Part shown: positions 9,563 to 32,402 of the stretch, one piece after another | How positions within the stretch are numbered: the stretch's first letter is position 1 | How the letters are laid out: each line of letters opens with the position of its first letter | From: Selaginella moellendorffii | Lineage: Eukaryota; Plantae; Lycopodiophyta | Assembly: GCF_000143415.4 (NCBI RefSeq) | Contig: NW_003314268.1 | Span: 2,744,494 to 2,808,493 of the forward strand | Direction: 5' to 3' | DNA: 64,000 nt | Program-made: the position numbers and the translations under genes | The notes under the pieces: generated by a model | What the model saw: only the letters and a program-made list of their open reading frames with translations | Database searches by the model: none | Told to the model about the DNA's origin: nothing

Positions 9563-10897
9563 TTAGATGCTTGCCAGCTTCTGAATCACTCTAGACTTTT
9601 CCGCGTCGATGATCCCGCATATGGCGTTCACTGATCTCTCTAGTTGCCCGTCCGAGTTAACCACCGCGTAATCAAACTCTTCCAGTCTCTTGAGCTCGTC
9701 TCTTGCGGTTGCTACTCTCACCACCAGTTTCTCCATGCTCTCCGTCTTTCTTTCTATCAGTCTCTTCACCAGAGCAAACTCCGACTCTGCGACGATGTAG
9801 ATGAAAACGGCGTTGGAGCCGAGTATCGAGCGAACTGTGGCAGCTCCTTGGACGTCAACTCTCAAAACGACGTCCTTCCCTTCGGCCAAGCAATCTCGCA
9901 CCTACATGAAATTAGAAAAACCGAAGGAGAGATAGATAGACCAGCTTACTTGTTTCTTAGGAATCCCTTTATAATCTCCGTAGACCAGCGCATGCTCCAA
10001 GAGCTCTTTCTTGTCAATCATCTCCTCAAACTCTTCCTTGCTGACGAAGTAGTAGTCGACACCATGAACTTCTCCGGGACGCTTTTGCCTGCTAGTGGCG
10101 GTCACCACGAAATGTATCTCCTTCCTCACTTCTTGAAGCCTCTACACAAGACACAACCATGGAGAAATCAGCCCGAGAAACCAGACAATCCACAAACCTT
10201 GATGACAGAGTCTTTGCCAACACCGCTTGGGCCACTGATGACAATTACCAGAGGCTTTGGTGCGGGAACTTGAGGCCCGACATCGAAAGGCGTCCCCAGT
10301 GCCTCCTCGAGCTGCGTCATCATTTTCACCTGGAACATGAAGAGCCAACCAGTAAGAACATGAAAGAGAACTAGGAAAAGAACCTTAAGAAACTTACGAG
10401 CATAGATATAGATTCATAAGAAGAACAAGGAAATCAAGAACATAGACAAAGGAGAACAAGGAAAGAAGCTTACAACACACACAGGGATTGAAGAAGAAAC
10501 TTACGAGCGTAGATATTCATAGGAAGAACAAGGAAAAGAAGCTTACAACGCGAAGATGAAACTTACGAGCATAGATAGCAAAGAAAAGAAAGAGCTCCAA
10601 TACCTCGTTGAGGCCACTGGCGATGTCCGAGGGCGACGCTCCGGTCGAGTCTTTGTCTTTACATCCTGAAGCAAAGCTTGACAAGAGTGAGGACCAGGAA
10701 GGAGGAGGCCGATGATGCTTTGGACGCCTACTACCACTCCCACTACACAGCTCACTCACTCTCCCAAGTTTTAGCGAGCAGAACAAGCGGCTGGCAGTCA
10801 TTCTCTGCGGCGGAAAACGATGGAAATCTCTCACACAGCGGTGGGATTTGACGAGAACAAGCCTCGCGGCTCGAGGAGGGAGCCTAAATGCGCTCAT
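9563..10897 (-). CDS. Organellar guanylate kinase, multi-exon
   Basis: Transit-peptide-like N-terminus; [14 protein letters not shown]-loop; [21 protein letters not shown]; [16 protein letters not shown]; VLRVDVQGA. Confidence 0.93.
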
Positions 10898-25685: not shown

Positions 25686-27746
25686 ATGGAGGGGAAACTG
25701 CGGCGCTTCCCACTCTCGCTCTCGCTCCAGGACCTCCGGACGATCTCGGCACCAGCGGATCTCGAGGCCGCGTCTTCGCTAGACTGTTTCCAAGAGGATC
25801 CCCGTGGAACAGCGTCCAAGAGCTTGGGTTTCAGCCTTCCAGTGTACCATAGACCGGTCAGATGGCGAGTTGCTGCTGGGCTTTTGGTGCTCTCGCTGGT
25901 GCTGCTGCTCTTGTTCCTGGGATTTCTCTGGGGGAGGAGTCTGTGGAGCCAGGAGGAGCCGATCAAGTTCGCGATTGTGATGGACTGTGGCAGCACCAGC
26001 ACGAGAGTTTACGTCTATGGATGGGTTCACAACGGAGGATCTATCCCGGTTATGTATCGGCCACCTTCTCACAGCAGCGCCAATGCGAGAGTGAAGAAGG
26101 CTTACCACCGGATGGAAACGGAGCCTGGCTTCCACCAGCTGCTGCACAACGAGAGTGGCCTTGGCGCTGCTGTCCAGCCGCTGCTCGACTGGGCCAAGCA
26201 GCAGATCCCGGCTCGCTTGCACGGGGAGACGCCGCTGCTTCTCCTGGGAACGGCGGGCTTGCGGAAGCTGGCGACTGTAGACTCGGAGTGGCTGCTGGAC
26301 AAGGCGTGGGGAATCATCGAGAAGTCGCCGTTCAAGTGTAGGCGGAGCTGGCTGAGGATCATCAACGGGGTGGAGGAGGCCTACTATGGATGGGTGGCGT
26401 TGAACTATATCCTCGAGAGGCTGGGACAGGACGAGACGAAGATGACGCTGGGGACTGTTGGTTCTCTGGATCTGGGAGGCTCGTCCCTGGAGGTTACTTT
26501 CGAGCCGGGCGAGCCGATACGGCCAGACTACGGTGTGAATCTCAGCTTTGGTCAGGAGGAGCATCGGGTGTATGCGTACTCCCACTCTGGTTTCGGCCTC
26601 AACGATGCGTTCGACAAGTCCGTGGCGCTCCTCATGCACAACTCGAACGTGAGAAACGGGACTTTGGAAGTGAGGCATCCGTGTTTGCACTCCGAGTACC
26701 AGCAGTCTTACTCCTGCTCGTCGTACTGCGTGGCTCCTCCGTCCACTAACCGGGGAGCAGGCGAAGGTGGCGTTCCTATAGTTTTAGTTGGAGAGCCTCA
26801 CTGGGGAAAATGCCAGGCGCTCGCTCGTTCCGTCATCAACTCGTCGAGATTTACAACGCGGTCAGTAGATTGCGAGCAGAGTAACTGCGCGCTGGGGAAG
26901 TATCAGCCACGGCCGATCGGACAGTTTTACGCAGTGGCTGGGTTTTTTGTCATGTACAAGTTTTTCGGCCTGTCCTCCAAGGCGTCGCTGGACGATCTCT
27001 TGAGCAAAGGACAGGAGTTTTGTGGGAAGCCGTGGCCGGTTGCCAGGGACAGCGTCGATCCACAGGGATTTATCGACCGCTACTGCTTCCGAGCACCGTA
27101 CGTGGTGGCGCTGCTTAGAGAGGGCCTTCACTTGAGGGACGAGCAAGTAACAGTCGGGCCAGGGGACGTGACTTGGACACAAGGCGCTGCCCTGCTCGAG
27201 GCCGGAGTGCTGGAGAAGAGCTCACGCTCACACAGGAAGCAGAGGTGGTGGTTTTATAGCCCGTCCTTCTTGCTGCCAACGCTGCTGCTTTTTTCGGCGG
27301 CCGCGGTTCTCGTTGTGCTACTTCACTGGTGTGGAAGGCAGGCGTCGTACTCGAGCATTCTTCCGTTTGATTCAAAGCCGGGTGCTGCGAATGGAGGAGG
27401 CTCGCGAGGAGTGTCGCGGTGGCCACTCAACTTCGTGCGGCGTGGTAAGAAAAGCTTCCTTCTGTTTCTTTCATGTCTCGTTTGTTTTCCTTCTGATTTT
27501 GTGAGCGAAACCCGTGCAGGAGTGAAGTCGCCGCAAAGTCCCGCTCCGACGCCGTCCAAGAACATCTTCGAGGATCTTCATGCATCCTCGCCGCTGCTCT
27601 TGGAGGGTGATGCGCTGAGATTGCCACCGGCGGGTCCTGGACTGGGCCGAGCACAGCATCTCGCCAGCGCAATGATGCAGCTCAAGGTCGGCTCGCGGCT
27701 GCAGAGTCGGAGAACTTTGTCCAAGGAAGATCTTAACAACTTATAA
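25686..27746 (+). CDS. APY7: GDA1/CD39 apyrase (APY7-like), two TM segments, probable intron about 27445-27518
   Basis: ACR motifs DCGSTSTR, GTAGLR, GVEEAYYGWVALNY, DLGGSSLE and WTQGAAL; N-terminal RFPLSLSLQDL and C-terminal LQSRR.LSKEDL as in APY7-type proteins. Confidence 0.9.
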   Translation: MEGKLRRFPLSLSLQDLRTISAPADLEAASSLDCFQEDPRGTASKSLGFSLPVYHRPVRWRVAAGLLVLSLVLLLLFLGFLWGRSLWSQEEPIKFAIVMDCGSTSTRVYVYGWVHNGGSIPVMYRPPSHSSANARVKKAYHRMETEPGFHQLLHNESGLGAAVQPLLDWAKQQIPARLHGETPLLLLGTAGLRKLATVDSEWLLDKAWGIIEKSPFKCRRSWLRIINGVEEAYYGWVALNYILERLGQDETKMTLGTVGSLDLGGSSLEVTFEPGEPIRPDYGVNLSFGQEEHRVYAYSHSGFGLNDAFDKSVALLMHNSNVRNGTLEVRHPCLHSEYQQSYSCSSYCVAPPSTNRGAGEGGVPIVLVGEPHWGKCQALARSVINSSRFTTRSVDCEQSNCALGKYQPRPIGQFYAVAGFFVMYKFFGLSSKASLDDLLSKGQEFCGKPWPVARDSVDPQGFIDRYCFRAPYVVALLREGLHLRDEQVTVGPGDVTWTQGAALLEAGVLEKSSRSHRKQRWWFYSPSFLLPTLLLFSAAAVLVVLLHWCGRQASYSSILPFDSKPGAANGGGSRGVSRWPLNFVRRGKKSFLLFLSCLVCFPSDFVSETRAGVKSPQSPAPTPSKNIFEDLHASSPLLLEGDALRLPPAGPGLGRAQHLASAMMQLKVGSRLQSRRTLSKEDLNNL

Positions 27747-28108: not shown

Positions 28109-29395
28109 TTACATGACAATCTCTGGCTTCATGATGTTGGCCTTGATCTCCTTGTGTGGAAGAACCACACCACCATTGCTATAAATCTCGTCCGACACAT
28201 GCACGTCCTCGCCAAGGACCGTCATGTTCTCCACACGAGCCCATTGCCCGACTGTGGAGTGCCAGCCGATGATACTCCACGAAACGCACGCGTGCTTCTT
28301 GATCCGGACCCCCCTCATCACCGTGCAGTGCTTGAGCCGGACTCCATCCTCGATCACGCACCCCTGCCCGATCGAAACATCCGGCCCCAAGAGACAGCCT
28401 TGTCCGATGCTGGCACTCTCGTCGATGATCACGTTGTCGACGACGTTGGAGCCGCTCGCGAGTTTCTCTGGAGATTTCTTCCTCAGGGACTCGAGGTAGA
28501 GCTGCAGGCCTGTGATGTAGTCCTTGGGCTGTCCAATGTCCATCCAGAATCCCGGCAGGACCATGGCAAAGAGCTGCTTCTCCTGAGCGATGCCTGGGAA
28601 GACCTCCTTCTCGATCGACGTTGGCCGCAGCTCGATCCGGTCCAGGACGCTCGGGTTGAGGAGATAGACCCCGGCGTTGATCTTGTTTCCGACAAACGTT
28701 TGTGGCTTCTCCACGAATCTGTGAACCAGGCCAGTGTCTTCGTCCAGCACCACGACTCCATACTTGGATGGCTCGTCAACCTTCACAGGGATTCTCTGTT
28801 AGATCTGGAGCAAAGGGAAAAAAGGAACAACGAAAAGGAGGAAGCGAAGCTTACCTGTGTGACCATGATCGAGGCCTCTCCTTTGTGCTGCTTGTGGAAA
28901 GCTATCATTTGCTCCAGCGGGTACTCGCAGATAACATCACTGTTGAGGACGAAGAATGGCTCCCCAGAGCCGTCGAGTAGCTTGTCGCGAGCAAGAGCCA
29001 GAGGCCCCGCAGTCCCCATCGGCTCTCGCTCCTGCGAGCAAGTGATCTTCACGCCCAGCTTCGCCTCGAAATCCTTTAGGAAGCTAAGCATCACCTACAA
29101 GGACAAAGAGAGTGAGCCTTTTCCTACAAATTCCCTTGACAAATCTTACCTCTGGCTGGTAACTGATCGCCAGAACTACCTCCGTGACTCCCACAGCCTT
29201 GAGCGCCTCGATCTACAACACACAAGAGTGAGATCTGGCAGCGGGAGAGCTGGATCTAGCCCCTAGATTGAAATTTCAACGCACCTGGTGGAAGATCATC
29301 GGCTTGTTGGCGAAATCTACCAGCGGCTTGGGCAGGCTGAGCGTGAGCGGCCTCAGCCGGGTGCCAAATCCTCCGACAAGAATCAGCGCCTTCAT
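28109..29395 (-). CDS. VTC1: Mannose-1-phosphate guanylyltransferase (GDP-mannose pyrophosphorylase), 4 exons
   Basis: [33 protein letters not shown]; [14 protein letters not shown]; FVEKP; [11 protein letters not shown]; ends KPEIVM. Confidence 0.97.
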
Positions 29396-29574
29396 CTCTT
29401 CCTTCTTCCTCCTCGCAGCGAAACCTAGGCCTCTAGGGACAAGAAGTTCTTCGCGCCCTTGCTCTAGCAAAATCCTAATTCCATGGCCCTCTTTAAATAA
29501 CCCCCACCAAAAAGGTTGAGCGCCGTAAAGGTACTGGGCGATAATTAGGTCATTGTTTAAGAAGTTACTACCAA

Positions 29575-29662
29575 TCTCAACCGCTAGATCGTATTAAAAT
29601 CCGACGGACCAGAACATAAACTCTCAACCGCTAGATCGTGTTTAATCCAACGGACCAAAAAC
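29575..29662 (+). repeat. Two-copy tandem repeat (about 47-bp period) with AACGG-core (MSA-like) motifs, upstream of VTC1
   Basis: tctcaaccgctagatcgt...aatccgacggacca and tctcaaccgctagatcgt...aatccaacggacca. Confidence 0.7.
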
Positions 29663-29669
29663 GATAAAA

Positions 29670-32218
29670 TCACACGCACTCAGTCTCGAGGCCGTACTCG
29701 AGGAAGTAATTCCGGAATTCTTCCCACACCACGTCCCCGTCGCCGTTGGCGTCGAGCTTCTTATACATGTCTTCCAAGAGTTCCTGTCACAAATCCAACG
29801 AGAAAACTCGTAAGGTTCTCATCATGGAACATGAGAGATTTGCGTAAACTTTTGAGAGATTTGGAGTAAACTTTGAGCATACCTCGGGGACGTTTCGATG
29901 GCCGCACTTGATGTCTGTGAGATCCTCCATCATCAGAAGCAACTCGTCGCGGCTGAGCTTGGTGTCTTTGTTTATGTTGTAGCGGTCCCAGATCCTGTGC
30001 AGCAGGAAGAATGTGAAGAAAAGAGAAAAGAAAAGGGAAGAGACAAACAACCGACCTTCGCAAGTCACCCTCTTGCAATTTGGTGCTCTGCAAATGACAT
30101 ATAAATGCTTTGCCTGGTGCTGCCCAAGACGCGGACAGATAATCCACGGACTGCATGTGGTTGAGTCGCGACACGGTCCTGGCAAACGCAAATTCCTCGT
30201 CTTTTTCTTCGTATGCGGTCGTTCCGCCCTTTTCTTCTCTCGGCTTCACGACTCCAGCAACTGGCTGGTCGTCCTCTAGTCTGCAAAGACAATGAGTCGT
30301 GGTTTTCAATGTTTTTCATAGAAGTACTAACCTTGGGAGGTATAGATCTCCAGGCTGTGCGTCCGCGCTAACGATTAGTTTAACTTTCTGCAAAAGAGAT
30401 TCCTGTGAGATAAACAAACAACCCGCTGAGAGTCAAACTTACATGCTCGTAAAATACATCAACAAGCGTGATGAATCTCCTTGCCTGTAACGCGCACAAG
30501 CGTCGGTCAGAAAACGAGTGGCGAGGAAGTTGTTTACCATTTCAGCATGAGAGCGTGTCATTCTAGGAATGCCGGCGATAAACACGGTATGGAAGGACGC
30601 AGCTATGGCGATGTAGTCGGCTGCGCCTTTGAAAGTTCCACAAAGTTCATAGAAGGTGAAGTATGCAATTCCACCAGCGGCCCTTGGTACTGCACGAGTC
30701 AAGATCGTTAGCTGCAAGGTTTGAGTAAGCTGCTTGGATACATACCAAAGATGGCCCTGTTACTCTCTTTCAAAACAGTCGTAAAAATCGGTCTATCGCC
30801 AGCAAGCTCGAGGAAAGAGCGCTCCAGGGCTTTAGAGGTCTCTTCGTTCAAAGGCATGTGCCATACGACAGACAGGGAACTACCAAAAACCACGTAGATT
30901 AGAAAAAGGCCGGCAAAAATTGCAACTAAAGACAGAATACCTGGAACCATCGGGACGTGCACCTATTAGACGATAGTCTGGAGAGTTTGGACGAAAAACA
31001 TGGACCTCGCAGCGGCTCTTAATAAGCTCTATGCAAGGTAGAAAGAGGTCTCTTTGCAAACCATTTTTGTAGAGCTGTATATGCAAGTAAGCACGTAAAG
31101 AAGAAATTTTCAATCCTTACTTCAGAAGGTGCACGATTCGAGGATGCTACCATCACTGCCCCTGATCGAAAAAGGTTCTCCAAAAGCCTTCTCAGTATCA
31201 TAGCGTCAGCGATATCTATGACCTGCAAGAAGAGAACAGGAGCGTTAATAGTTAGAAACAAAAGTATTTTGAAAGGACAACCAGAGCACGCAGACCAAGC
31301 AGCTTTGGTTCTTACAGAAAACTTATTTACGTGGTGAGGGACAAATGGAGACCACTCCTACTGGAAAAATCAATCAATTACAGTACACACCTGACAAAAA
31401 ATGAAGCGAGATCAGGATCCCTTTAAAACAAACGTCACTGAGAAAGCTCACGCACTTGAAACTCGTCAAAGCAAAGCAGCCAACCAGCCGCCAACAAGTC
31501 CCGAGCTACTAATTCGATCAAGTCGCCTGACTTCCCTTGTCCTTGCAAGCGCTTCTCATGCAATCTACACACACAAGAGTAGAGAATTTGTTCTTTTCTT
31601 CTTCAAGGAAAACAATGTATGTTGAAGTACCTCTTGTGGACGTCGAGCATGAACTGGTGAAAGTGAACTCGTCTCTTACTTCTCACAGGACTACAGTGAA
31701 AGAAGATATCTTGAACGAGAGATTTTCCAGTGCCGACTCCTCCATAGATATACACCCTGCAAACACACCAGTGCAAGTTCAAAGACAAAAGACAAGAAAA
31801 ACACAAAGAAGAAGAAGAAGAAAAAAAATTGGTACCCTTTGGGCGCTTCTTGAGATGGTTTGAGCCGAAAAGCACTGAAGAACTTGGAGGTGAGATTAGC
31901 TGAGGTCGCCGGCTCGTAGCCTTGGAGCTCTCGATGCAAGCGCTCCAGAGGCTGGAGAGCTGCAAGCTGGCCATTGTCGTGCCGAATCGTCCCAGCTTTG
32001 ACGAGCTGATGATAGGCGTCCAGCGGCGCAGTGCCGACTGGAATGTCCTCAATGCGCGCCGTGGAGGAGACCGCGCCATGGAGCTCGTGGAGGAAGCGAT
32101 TGAGCAGCGTGAGTGAGGGCCTGGGCGAGCGCTGCAAGTGGCCGATGCTCAAGAACGCCATGGATGATCGATCTGGAGAAGAAAAGGAAGAGATTGCGAT
32201 CGATCGCAAGCTAGACAT
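29670..32218 (-). CDS. AFG1/ZapE-like ATPase with a C-terminal EF-hand pair, multi-exon
   Basis: GVYIYGGVGTGKS (Walker A), RVHFHQFMLDVH, CFDEFQ (Walker B), SNRAPSELYKNGLQRDLFLP, ARRFITLVDVFYE, FAFARTVSRL.HMQS, then in-frame exons with NINKDTKLSRDE and DANGDGDVVWEE. Start is 32218 or 32161. Confidence 0.88.
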
Positions 32219-32371
32219 CGATAGAGCATTTGCGCCAAACCTCGGCTCCTCTTTCTCAGTGCAGCATCGCCCGCCGCTTCACGCAAAAGCGTTCTTCCTC
32301 GACATTTAAAAAACCTAACGTATATTCTGACGGCATATGCTCTGGGTTTAGCATAGGGACGGAATGTGCGC

Positions 32372-32379
32372 TAGGGTTT
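32372..32379 (-). promoter_or_regulatory. Telo-box (AAACCCTA) in the AFG1/NOL6 bidirectional promoter
   Basis: TAGGGTTT 24 nt before the NOL6 ATG. Telo-boxes are typical of plant ribosome-biogenesis genes. Confidence 0.55.
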
Positions 32380-32402
32380 ATGGGTTAGGGCTTTAGTCGC
32401 CA

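Follow-up and report, generated by a model that had tools for sequence, protein, structure and literature searches.

An expressed AFG1/ZapE-type ATPase with a C-terminal EF-hand pair in Selaginella moellendorffii

We describe here an expressed gene of Selaginella moellendorffii that encodes an AFG1-type ATPase and a C-terminal EF-hand pair in one polypeptide. The gene lies on the minus strand, at positions 32268..29565, of a 64,000-nucleotide (nt) stretch of assembly GCF_000143415.4 (NW_003314268.1:2,744,494-2,808,493), called the window below, which was read on that strand from 33200 to 29400; the locus occupies about 2.7 kb and has 12 coding exons for 543 amino acids (aa). That the ATPase and the EF-hands are truly fused and expressed is, in our view, close to certain. 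The protein represents a conserved variant, so far uncharacterised, within a known ATPase family rather than something categorically new, and taken as a whole it is likely to be the Selaginella member of an old tailed AFG1/ZapE AAA+ clade, putatively mitochondrial and tuned by Ca2+. The part that AFG1/LACE1 ATPases play in turning over respiratory-chain subunits is poorly understood, and we know of no regulator for them in most organisms. Yeast Afg1 and human LACE1/AFG1L act in the turnover of complex IV subunits and three Arabidopsis AFG1-like proteins are mitochondrial (PMC12464808), while a trypanosome AFG1 homologue is cited as interacting with Oxa1 (in PMC12699882).

Results

The sequence-only reading of this DNA had followed the frame past the AFG1 end motif EEFAFARTVSRLNHMQSVDY and through two GT-AG introns into two EF exons that read IWDRYNINKDTKLSRDELLLMMEDLTDIKCGHRNVPE and ELLEDMYKKLDANGDGDVVWEEFRNYFLEYGLETECV; every residue of that account proved accurate, and only the minus strand has to be added to it. 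After the motif the frame stays open for 27 more codons up to the exon boundary at GDLRR. All coding introns of the complete model begin with GT and end with AG, and the frame has no internal stop. The claim that an AFG1-type ATPase is covalently fused to a C-terminal EF-hand pair holds as well, since both domains pass their Pfam thresholds and RNA contigs span the two of them.

The transcript evidence was drawn from public sequencing runs. The locus is present in 20 runs from about ten studies, in which about half of the sampled words were found, as expected for exons alone. RNA-type contigs from four runs, each from a different study, were compared with window positions 29400-32400 (3,001 letters). 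Ten of the 11 coding-intron joints coincide exactly with the prediction in each of the four runs, including 29783/29883 and 29994/30056, the two joints that lead into the EF-hand exons. The eleventh coding intron (31835-31757) lies in a repeat-masked stretch, where the contigs run on from 31755 straight to 31835. In run X4 one contig of 1,769 nt extends from 29565 to 32174 through all exons, ATPase and EF-hands together, a 1,506-nt contig of run X2 joins exons 5-12, and in run X12 exon 10 is joined to both EF exons in one contig. Contigs that lack all of these introns must therefore derive from spliced RNA.

The RNA contigs also bear on the start of translation. A 5' intron (32240-32173) is spliced out in X1 and X2, and the loose end of the X4 contig supports the same junction. 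Because this intron removes ATG 32218, the first ATG in frame, translation most likely starts from 32161; the start codon is thus probably the second ATG, with a product of 543 aa instead of 562 aa. The NCBI label 'isoform X2' on the corresponding protein suggests another annotated isoform. Two low-depth contigs fall on introns, one from X1 on intron 10 (29995-30055; variant letters at 30011 and 30041) and one from X2 inside intron 3 (31231-31394), and they represent either minor intron retention or a second haplotype. A transcript that keeps intron 10 misses the EF-hands and acquires an unrelated out-of-frame tail instead (open reading frame [ORF] 29761-30309). Retention of intron 10 looks like a minor form, in amounts that contigs cannot quantify.

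On every sequence criterion tested, the protein belongs to the AFG1/ZapE family. Searches with the spliced model used one exon at a time, and for whole-protein searches the identical NCBI protein served as query. Exons 1-10 match the Pfam AFG1_ATPase profile (PF03969) colinearly from profile position 1 to 359 of 361, and the whole protein scores 325.6 bits over residues 44-392 (cutoff 27). When exon 10 was used as HMMER query against 1.84 billion representatives, a 543-aa protein was recovered at 100% identity; the model joined from the second ATG is identical to the NCBI entry 'AFG1-like ATPase isoform X2 [Selaginella moellendorffii]'. The same query also matched fragments from other species that break off at the GDLRR exon boundary. 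The Walker A and Walker B motifs are present with their key residues invariant, as is the family C-terminal motif DExFAFxRTxSRLxxMQ, of which D, E, F, A, R, S, R, and M are invariant in an alignment of 19 tails. Yeast Afg1 and human AFG1L (LACE1) share all of this with the Selaginella protein: PF03969, Walker A and B, and the C-terminal motif. The ATPase core is also homologous to alphaproteobacterial ZapE (42-46% identity over the core), which differs in being about 370-390 aa long, without N-terminal extension and without tail, and in its described role in cell division rather than in an organelle. In the Selaginella protein the N-terminal extension of 43 aa contains four Arg/Lys and three Asp/Glu residues, with no acidic residue before position 26. 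An AlphaFold2 model that was based on the alignment of 45 sequences has a mean predicted local distance difference test (pLDDT) score of 84.5, and the core is mostly above 90. Foldseek searches with the core gave as best matches the AAA+ modules of DnaI, DnaC, DnaA, IstB, and TnsC, a generic likeness only. A sequence search of the PDB found no AFG1/ZapE structure; only EF-hand proteins were matched, and these by the tail.

The tail comprises 107 aa beyond the SRLxxM motif. It matches EF-hand_7 (PF13499) over residues 466-533 with 33.5 bits against a cutoff of 30, and exons 11 and 12 searched singly give weak EF-hand matches below threshold. In the AlphaFold2 model the tail forms four helices (464-474, 484-499, 506-516, and 526-536; pLDDT about 84-94), and short strands at 481-482 and 524-525 pair the two loops as in a classical EF-hand pair. 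The second loop, DANGDGDVVWEE (residues 517-528), had been called a canonical 12-residue Ca2+-binding loop in the sequence-only reading. This is correct for the ligand positions Asp1, Asn3, Asp5, Gly6, and Glu12, all of which are canonical, and has to be qualified for position 9, where the loop has Val and does not match a simplified pattern of the PROSITE type. When the loops were compared between lineages, all land plants were found to have Asn1 and no Gly6 in loop 1 and D-A-N-x-D-G-x-(V/I)-(V/I)-W-x-E in loop 2. Both loops are of textbook type in Cymbomonas and haptophyte-type sequences; in brown algae, Tribonema, and labyrinthulids loop 1 is of textbook type and loop 2 is degenerate. Every lineage examined has retained the complete ligand set in one loop or both, which is what would be expected if metal binding matters.

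The two hands are connected by a linker, GH(R/K)xV (residues 500-505; GHRNV in Selaginella, beginning at residue 500), whose His and Val are invariant in 19 of 19 tails from liverworts to haptophytes and labyrinthulids. It is conserved more strictly than either calcium loop, and on the strength of this alignment may be regarded as the signature of the tailed AFG1 family. We know of no described function for it.

The tailed architecture is not confined to Selaginella. Typical family members end about 12 residues after SRLxxM, and tailed ones run 101-165 residues further; the sampled fungal and amoebozoan AFG1 proteins stop about 11-18 residues (one 65) past this motif, in contrast to the 107 of the Selaginella protein. 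Tailed orthologues with 57-69% identity were found in the mosses Physcomitrium and Ceratodon, the liverworts Calypogeia and Marchantia, and the ferns Adiantum and Ceratopteris. At about 40% identity there are tailed relatives in the prasinophyte Cymbomonas, the yellow-green alga Tribonema, the haptophyte Haptolina, the labyrinthulid Hondaea, and MMETSP transcripts, as well as in the brown algae Ectocarpus, Scytosiphon, Choristocarpus, Discosporangium, and Undaria. The same fusion is encoded by transcript-derived ORFs of other species (eukprot c19432, MMETSP 'type:complete' ORFs, and two intron-free Logan contigs), and an ESM Atlas cluster of 140 members combines AFG1_ATPase with EF-hand. The closest comparison is with the mosses: Physcomitrium patens A0A2K1KUX4, named 'EF-hand domain-containing protein', and Ceratodon M758_1G128000 have the same architecture, 542-543 aa, 66% identity, and the same intron positions. 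They represent the same gene in other species and are equally uncharacterised. The exon structure of the Ceratodon gene is the same throughout, including the introns at GDLRR/VWDRY and GHRYVPS/ELV that flank the first EF exon.

No tail was detected in a named seed-plant, animal, or fungal protein in either the tail-region or the whole-protein searches. No seed-plant protein occurs among the 120 best matches (at least 303 bits) of the Selaginella query, and none was found at E<=1e-100 with a fern query, for which the scores drop from bryophytes (at least 576 bits) to Cymbomonas (408 bits); animal proteins are likewise missing from the best matches. Since the database covers hundreds of angiosperm genomes, the case for absence from angiosperms is strong. 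It is weaker for gymnosperms: four Logan matches (ERR2020652, SRR8210167) come without a species, and one of them is possibly from a seed plant. The sequence-only reading had found the architecture unfamiliar in angiosperms, fungi, and animals. This stands insofar as no named protein of these groups carries it, but the architecture is neither rare nor unseen, being conserved from bryophytes to labyrinthulids and already listed by NCBI and UniProt with automatically assigned names ('AFG1-like ATPase isoform X2', 'EF-hand domain-containing protein'). The same reading had allowed that the fusion might prove widespread and already characterised; widespread it is, and full-text searches for AFG1 or ZapE with EF-hand returned, from the literature library used, no paper that describes or characterises it.

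A tree was built with IQ-TREE (LG+C20) from the ATPase part only, with the tails cut off, on 57 rows with alphaproteobacterial ZapE as outgroup; Arabidopsis and human AFG1 proteins, none of which is among the matches listed, are not among the rows. The branch between the 38 rows of the tailed clade and the 19 tail-less rows is supported at 98/89. Land plants are united at 100/100 and land plants plus Cymbomonas at 100/98, and the sister of the tailed clade consists of tail-less AFG1 proteins from fungi and the amoebozoan Acytostelium (98/88). One short sequence inside the tailed clade is probably a truncated gene call. The separation of tailed from tail-less sequences in a tree that did not see the tails indicates that the fusion arose once and early, in the lineage to plants, algae, and stramenopile/haptophyte protists, and it sits on a mitochondrial-type (alphaproteobacterial-like) AFG1. 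The intact ATPase and the well-folded EF-hand pair joined to it have thus been preserved over hundreds of millions of years.

Discussion

The basic N-terminal extension and the position in the tree together suggest a location on the matrix side of mitochondria, and we consider a mitochondrial location likely. A calcium-sensing function of the tail is plausible, with the balance of the evidence tipping slightly in its favour. If both apply, the protein would be imported into mitochondria and, like yeast Afg1 and human AFG1L/LACE1, would help to extract respiratory-chain subunits, or to turn them over, at the inner membrane. Ca2+ would bind to the tail, in land plants chiefly to loop 2, and the Ca2+-bound tail would change the way it touches either the ATPase or a partner, after which ATPase activity, ring assembly, or substrate handover could follow matrix calcium. 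The logic would be that of the calcium-dependent protein kinases (CDPK/CPK), in which a calmodulin-like domain is fused to the enzyme in place of a separate calmodulin. The likeness is one of working principle only, namely that an enzyme has C-terminal EF-hands built in where its relatives rely on free calmodulin; CDPKs belong to a different enzyme class and possess four EF-hands together with a defined autoinhibitory junction, whereas the tailed AFG1 has two EF-hands and no demonstrated autoinhibitory segment.

A second comparison is with Arabidopsis AFG1L1 (At4g30490), which is reported to bind calmodulin in a Ca2+-dependent manner within the AAA domain (PMC3830196, PMC4844381; also PMC6471148, PMC12464808, citing Bussemer et al., 2009). 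Like the Selaginella protein, AFG1L1 is a plant AFG1-family ATPase linked to calcium signalling. The difference is that its EF-hand protein, calmodulin, is separate, whereas the Selaginella protein has an EF-hand pair in the same polypeptide. Since no seed-plant protein is found among the best matches, AFG1L1 would be at best a distant paralogue of the Selaginella protein. A family-conserved basic helix (residues 133-157) follows Walker A in the tailed protein, and the calmodulin site of AFG1L1 reportedly lies close to Walker A too. With AFG1L1 as the lead, helix 133-157 may be put forward as a hypothetical tail-contact or calmodulin-binding-type segment.

Several observations weigh against the reading of an expressed, calcium-tuned fusion. 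The run records label the material as RNA only as a guess, and its RNA nature rests on the missing introns, not on the records. Loop 1, NINKDTKLSRDE (residues 475-486), has N, N, D, T, and E at positions 1, 3, 5, 6, and 12, so that Asn opens the loop and Thr takes the place of Gly at position 6; loop 1 of Marchantia also lacks Glu12. Loop 2 has Val (as in Selaginella) or Ile at position 9 in land plants. Neither Selaginella loop fits the simplified PROSITE-like pattern, which the algal relatives do fit; we take this failure as a caution, not as proof of non-binding. Judged by these residues, Ca2+ affinity may be low, or one of the two sites may be dead. The model does not place the tail on the core with confidence (predicted template modelling [pTM] score 0.53). 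Finally, two proteins of the oomycete Aphanomyces and one other member of the clade have long tails (about 118-139 aa) in which no EF-hand was detected and which also lack the GH(R/K)xV linker; such tails have either degenerated or been replaced, so the tail can apparently lose its EF character. A complex prediction for the core (60-440) and the tail (441-543) with two Ca2+ gave a score of 0.00, which, with controls not run, speaks neither for nor against docking.

These deviations could be accommodated if the tail were a docking or dimerisation module of EF-hand fold that does no calcium sensing in land plants and instead keeps a constitutive hold on a partner or a neighbouring subunit, as EH domains and other EF-hand pairs without a sensing role do. 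In land plants neither loop conforms to the strict consensus (loop 1 at positions 1 and 6, loop 2 at position 9), and the best-conserved element of the tail is the linker, not a loop residue. EH-domain matches are weak to moderate (18 bits in Selaginella; 25.8 bits in Ectocarpus, cutoff 22), the second loops of brown algae and labyrinthulids are clearly degenerate, and the Aphanomyces tails have no detectable EF-hand. Against a purely structural module stand the five residues (Asp1, Asn3, Asp5, Gly6, and Glu12) kept in loop 2 of all land plants, and the full-ligand loop found in every lineage examined points to selection on metal binding; EF-hand_7 is also above its Pfam threshold. We therefore consider a docking role devoid of calcium sensing unlikely, while giving it some weight.

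It is improbable, as we judge it, that the protein acts in chloroplasts, or in both organelles, where it would be a rare EF-hand protein of the stroma. Such a location has been reported for AFG1L1, described as dually localised and calmodulin-binding (PMC4844381 and PMC12464808, citing Bussemer et al., 2009), and most lineages with the fusion are photosynthetic. The labyrinthulid Hondaea, however, has the fusion and is non-photosynthetic, the tailed clade has members in oomycetes, and the clade is sister to mitochondrial fungal AFG1 and stands beside alphaproteobacterial ZapE, not beside cyanobacterial sequences.

A more far-reaching scenario can be formulated, which we regard as a long shot. 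The tailed protein might be the ancestral, calcium-gated form of mitochondrial AFG1, found throughout plants, algae, and related protists, whose EF pair clamps in cis and in a Ca2+-dependent manner on helix 133-157; seed plants would have lost the gene and would keep calcium control of AFG1-type ATPases only in trans, through calmodulin on AFG1L1. If this were true, the fusion would be a natural 'Rosetta stone' for a link between calcium and respiratory-chain proteostasis in mitochondria.

Least credible, to the point that we set it aside, is an artefactual fusion in which the EF exons form a separate small gene or are joined to the ATPase only in rare read-through or chimeric transcripts: Logan contigs are indeed assemblies and not single molecules, and the low-depth X1 contig on intron 10 corresponds to a form that misses the EF-hands, but the same joints recur in four studies with one contig covering every exon in X4 and the majority in X2, transcript-derived ORFs of other species encode the same fusion, the exon structure is conserved in moss, and the EF exons are preceded by introns of only 61 and 99 nt, with no start codon or promoter-sized gap.

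Under the preferred reading, a putatively mitochondrial and Ca2+-tuned AFG1, the tailed clade would point to protein quality control being linked directly to calcium signals in organelles, in a group whose conservation reaches from liverworts and ferns as far as brown algae and haptophytes. Physcomitrium, Marchantia, and Ectocarpus offer tractable models for this link. The clade also provides an evolutionary context for the isolated report of calmodulin binding by AFG1L1.

Features of the locus and neighbouring genes

The features of the gene are collected in Table 1.

Table 1. Features of the AFG1-EF gene in window coordinates.
Feature	Position	Strand	Remarks
5' untranslated first exon	32241..32268	-	X1 and X2 RNA contigs join 32241 to 32172; 17 loose letters of the X4 contig match the exon; upstream limit approximate
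5' intron, GT..AG, 68 nt	32173..32240	-	joint 32172/32241, CT..AC on the plus strand; removes upstream ATG 32218
Exon with start codon 32161 (MAFLSIGH...)	31836..32172	-	N-terminal extension of about 43 aa and start of the AFG1 domain; Pfam AFG1 from residue 44
Exon 1, coding	32218/32161-31836	-	alternative ATGs 32218 or 32161
Walker A, GGVGTGKS (residues 114-121)	31720..31743	-	G114, G117, G119, and K120 invariant in a 45-sequence alignment
Walker B, LLCFDEFQ (residues 180-187)	31456..31479	-	D184 and E185 invariant in a 45-sequence alignment
Exons 2-5 of the AFG1 AAA+ core	31756-31631, 31564-31456, 31222-31121, 31074-30941	-	GT-AG introns, colinear with PF03969
Exons 6-9 of the AFG1 AAA+ core	30879-30746, 30689-30538, 30484-30443, 30387-30332	-	GT-AG introns, colinear with PF03969
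Exon 10, end of the AFG1 domain and linker up to GDLRR	30056..30280	-	carries EEFAFARTVSRLNHMQSVDY at 30198-30139
Intron 10, GT..AG, 61 nt	29995..30055	-	joint in all four runs; same position in the Ceratodon gene
Exon 11, EF-hand 1	29883..29994	-	reads IWDRYNINKDTKLSRDELLLMMEDLTDIKCGHRNVPE; loop NINKDTKLSRDE at 29978-29943; GHRNVP linker 29903-29886
Intron 11, GT..AG, 99 nt	29784..29882	-	joint in all four runs; same position in Ceratodon
Exon 12, coding, EF-hand 2	29670..29783	-	reads ELLEDMYKKLDANGDGDVVWEEFRNYFLEYGLETECV; loop DANGDGDVVWEE at 29753-29718; TGA stop 29672-29670
3' untranslated region	29565..29669	-	RNA contig ends at 29565-29606

Within the 3' untranslated region a repeat search found a 24-nt direct repeat (29575-29598 and 29622-29645; 92% identity, 47-nt spacing), and Tandem Repeats Finder reported no repeat there. 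In Ceratodon purpureus CM026434.1 the gene beside the AFG1-EF orthologue (10269-10668) encodes a fidgetin-like AAA ATPase with FIGL1_N, AAA, and Vps4_C domains; none was seen in the Selaginella window. The gene adjoining AFG1-EF in Selaginella, about 170 nt downstream of the end of its transcript, encodes a GDP-mannose pyrophosphorylase (NTP_transferase and GMPPB_C; 28109-29400, minus strand), and its coverage in the RNA contigs is separate from that of AFG1-EF and much deeper. Further along, on the plus strand, an open frame of 686 aa (25686-27746) belongs to the GDA1/CD39 apyrase (nucleoside phosphatase) family with 193 bits and likely contains a short intron near 27447-27520 that is read through by chance.

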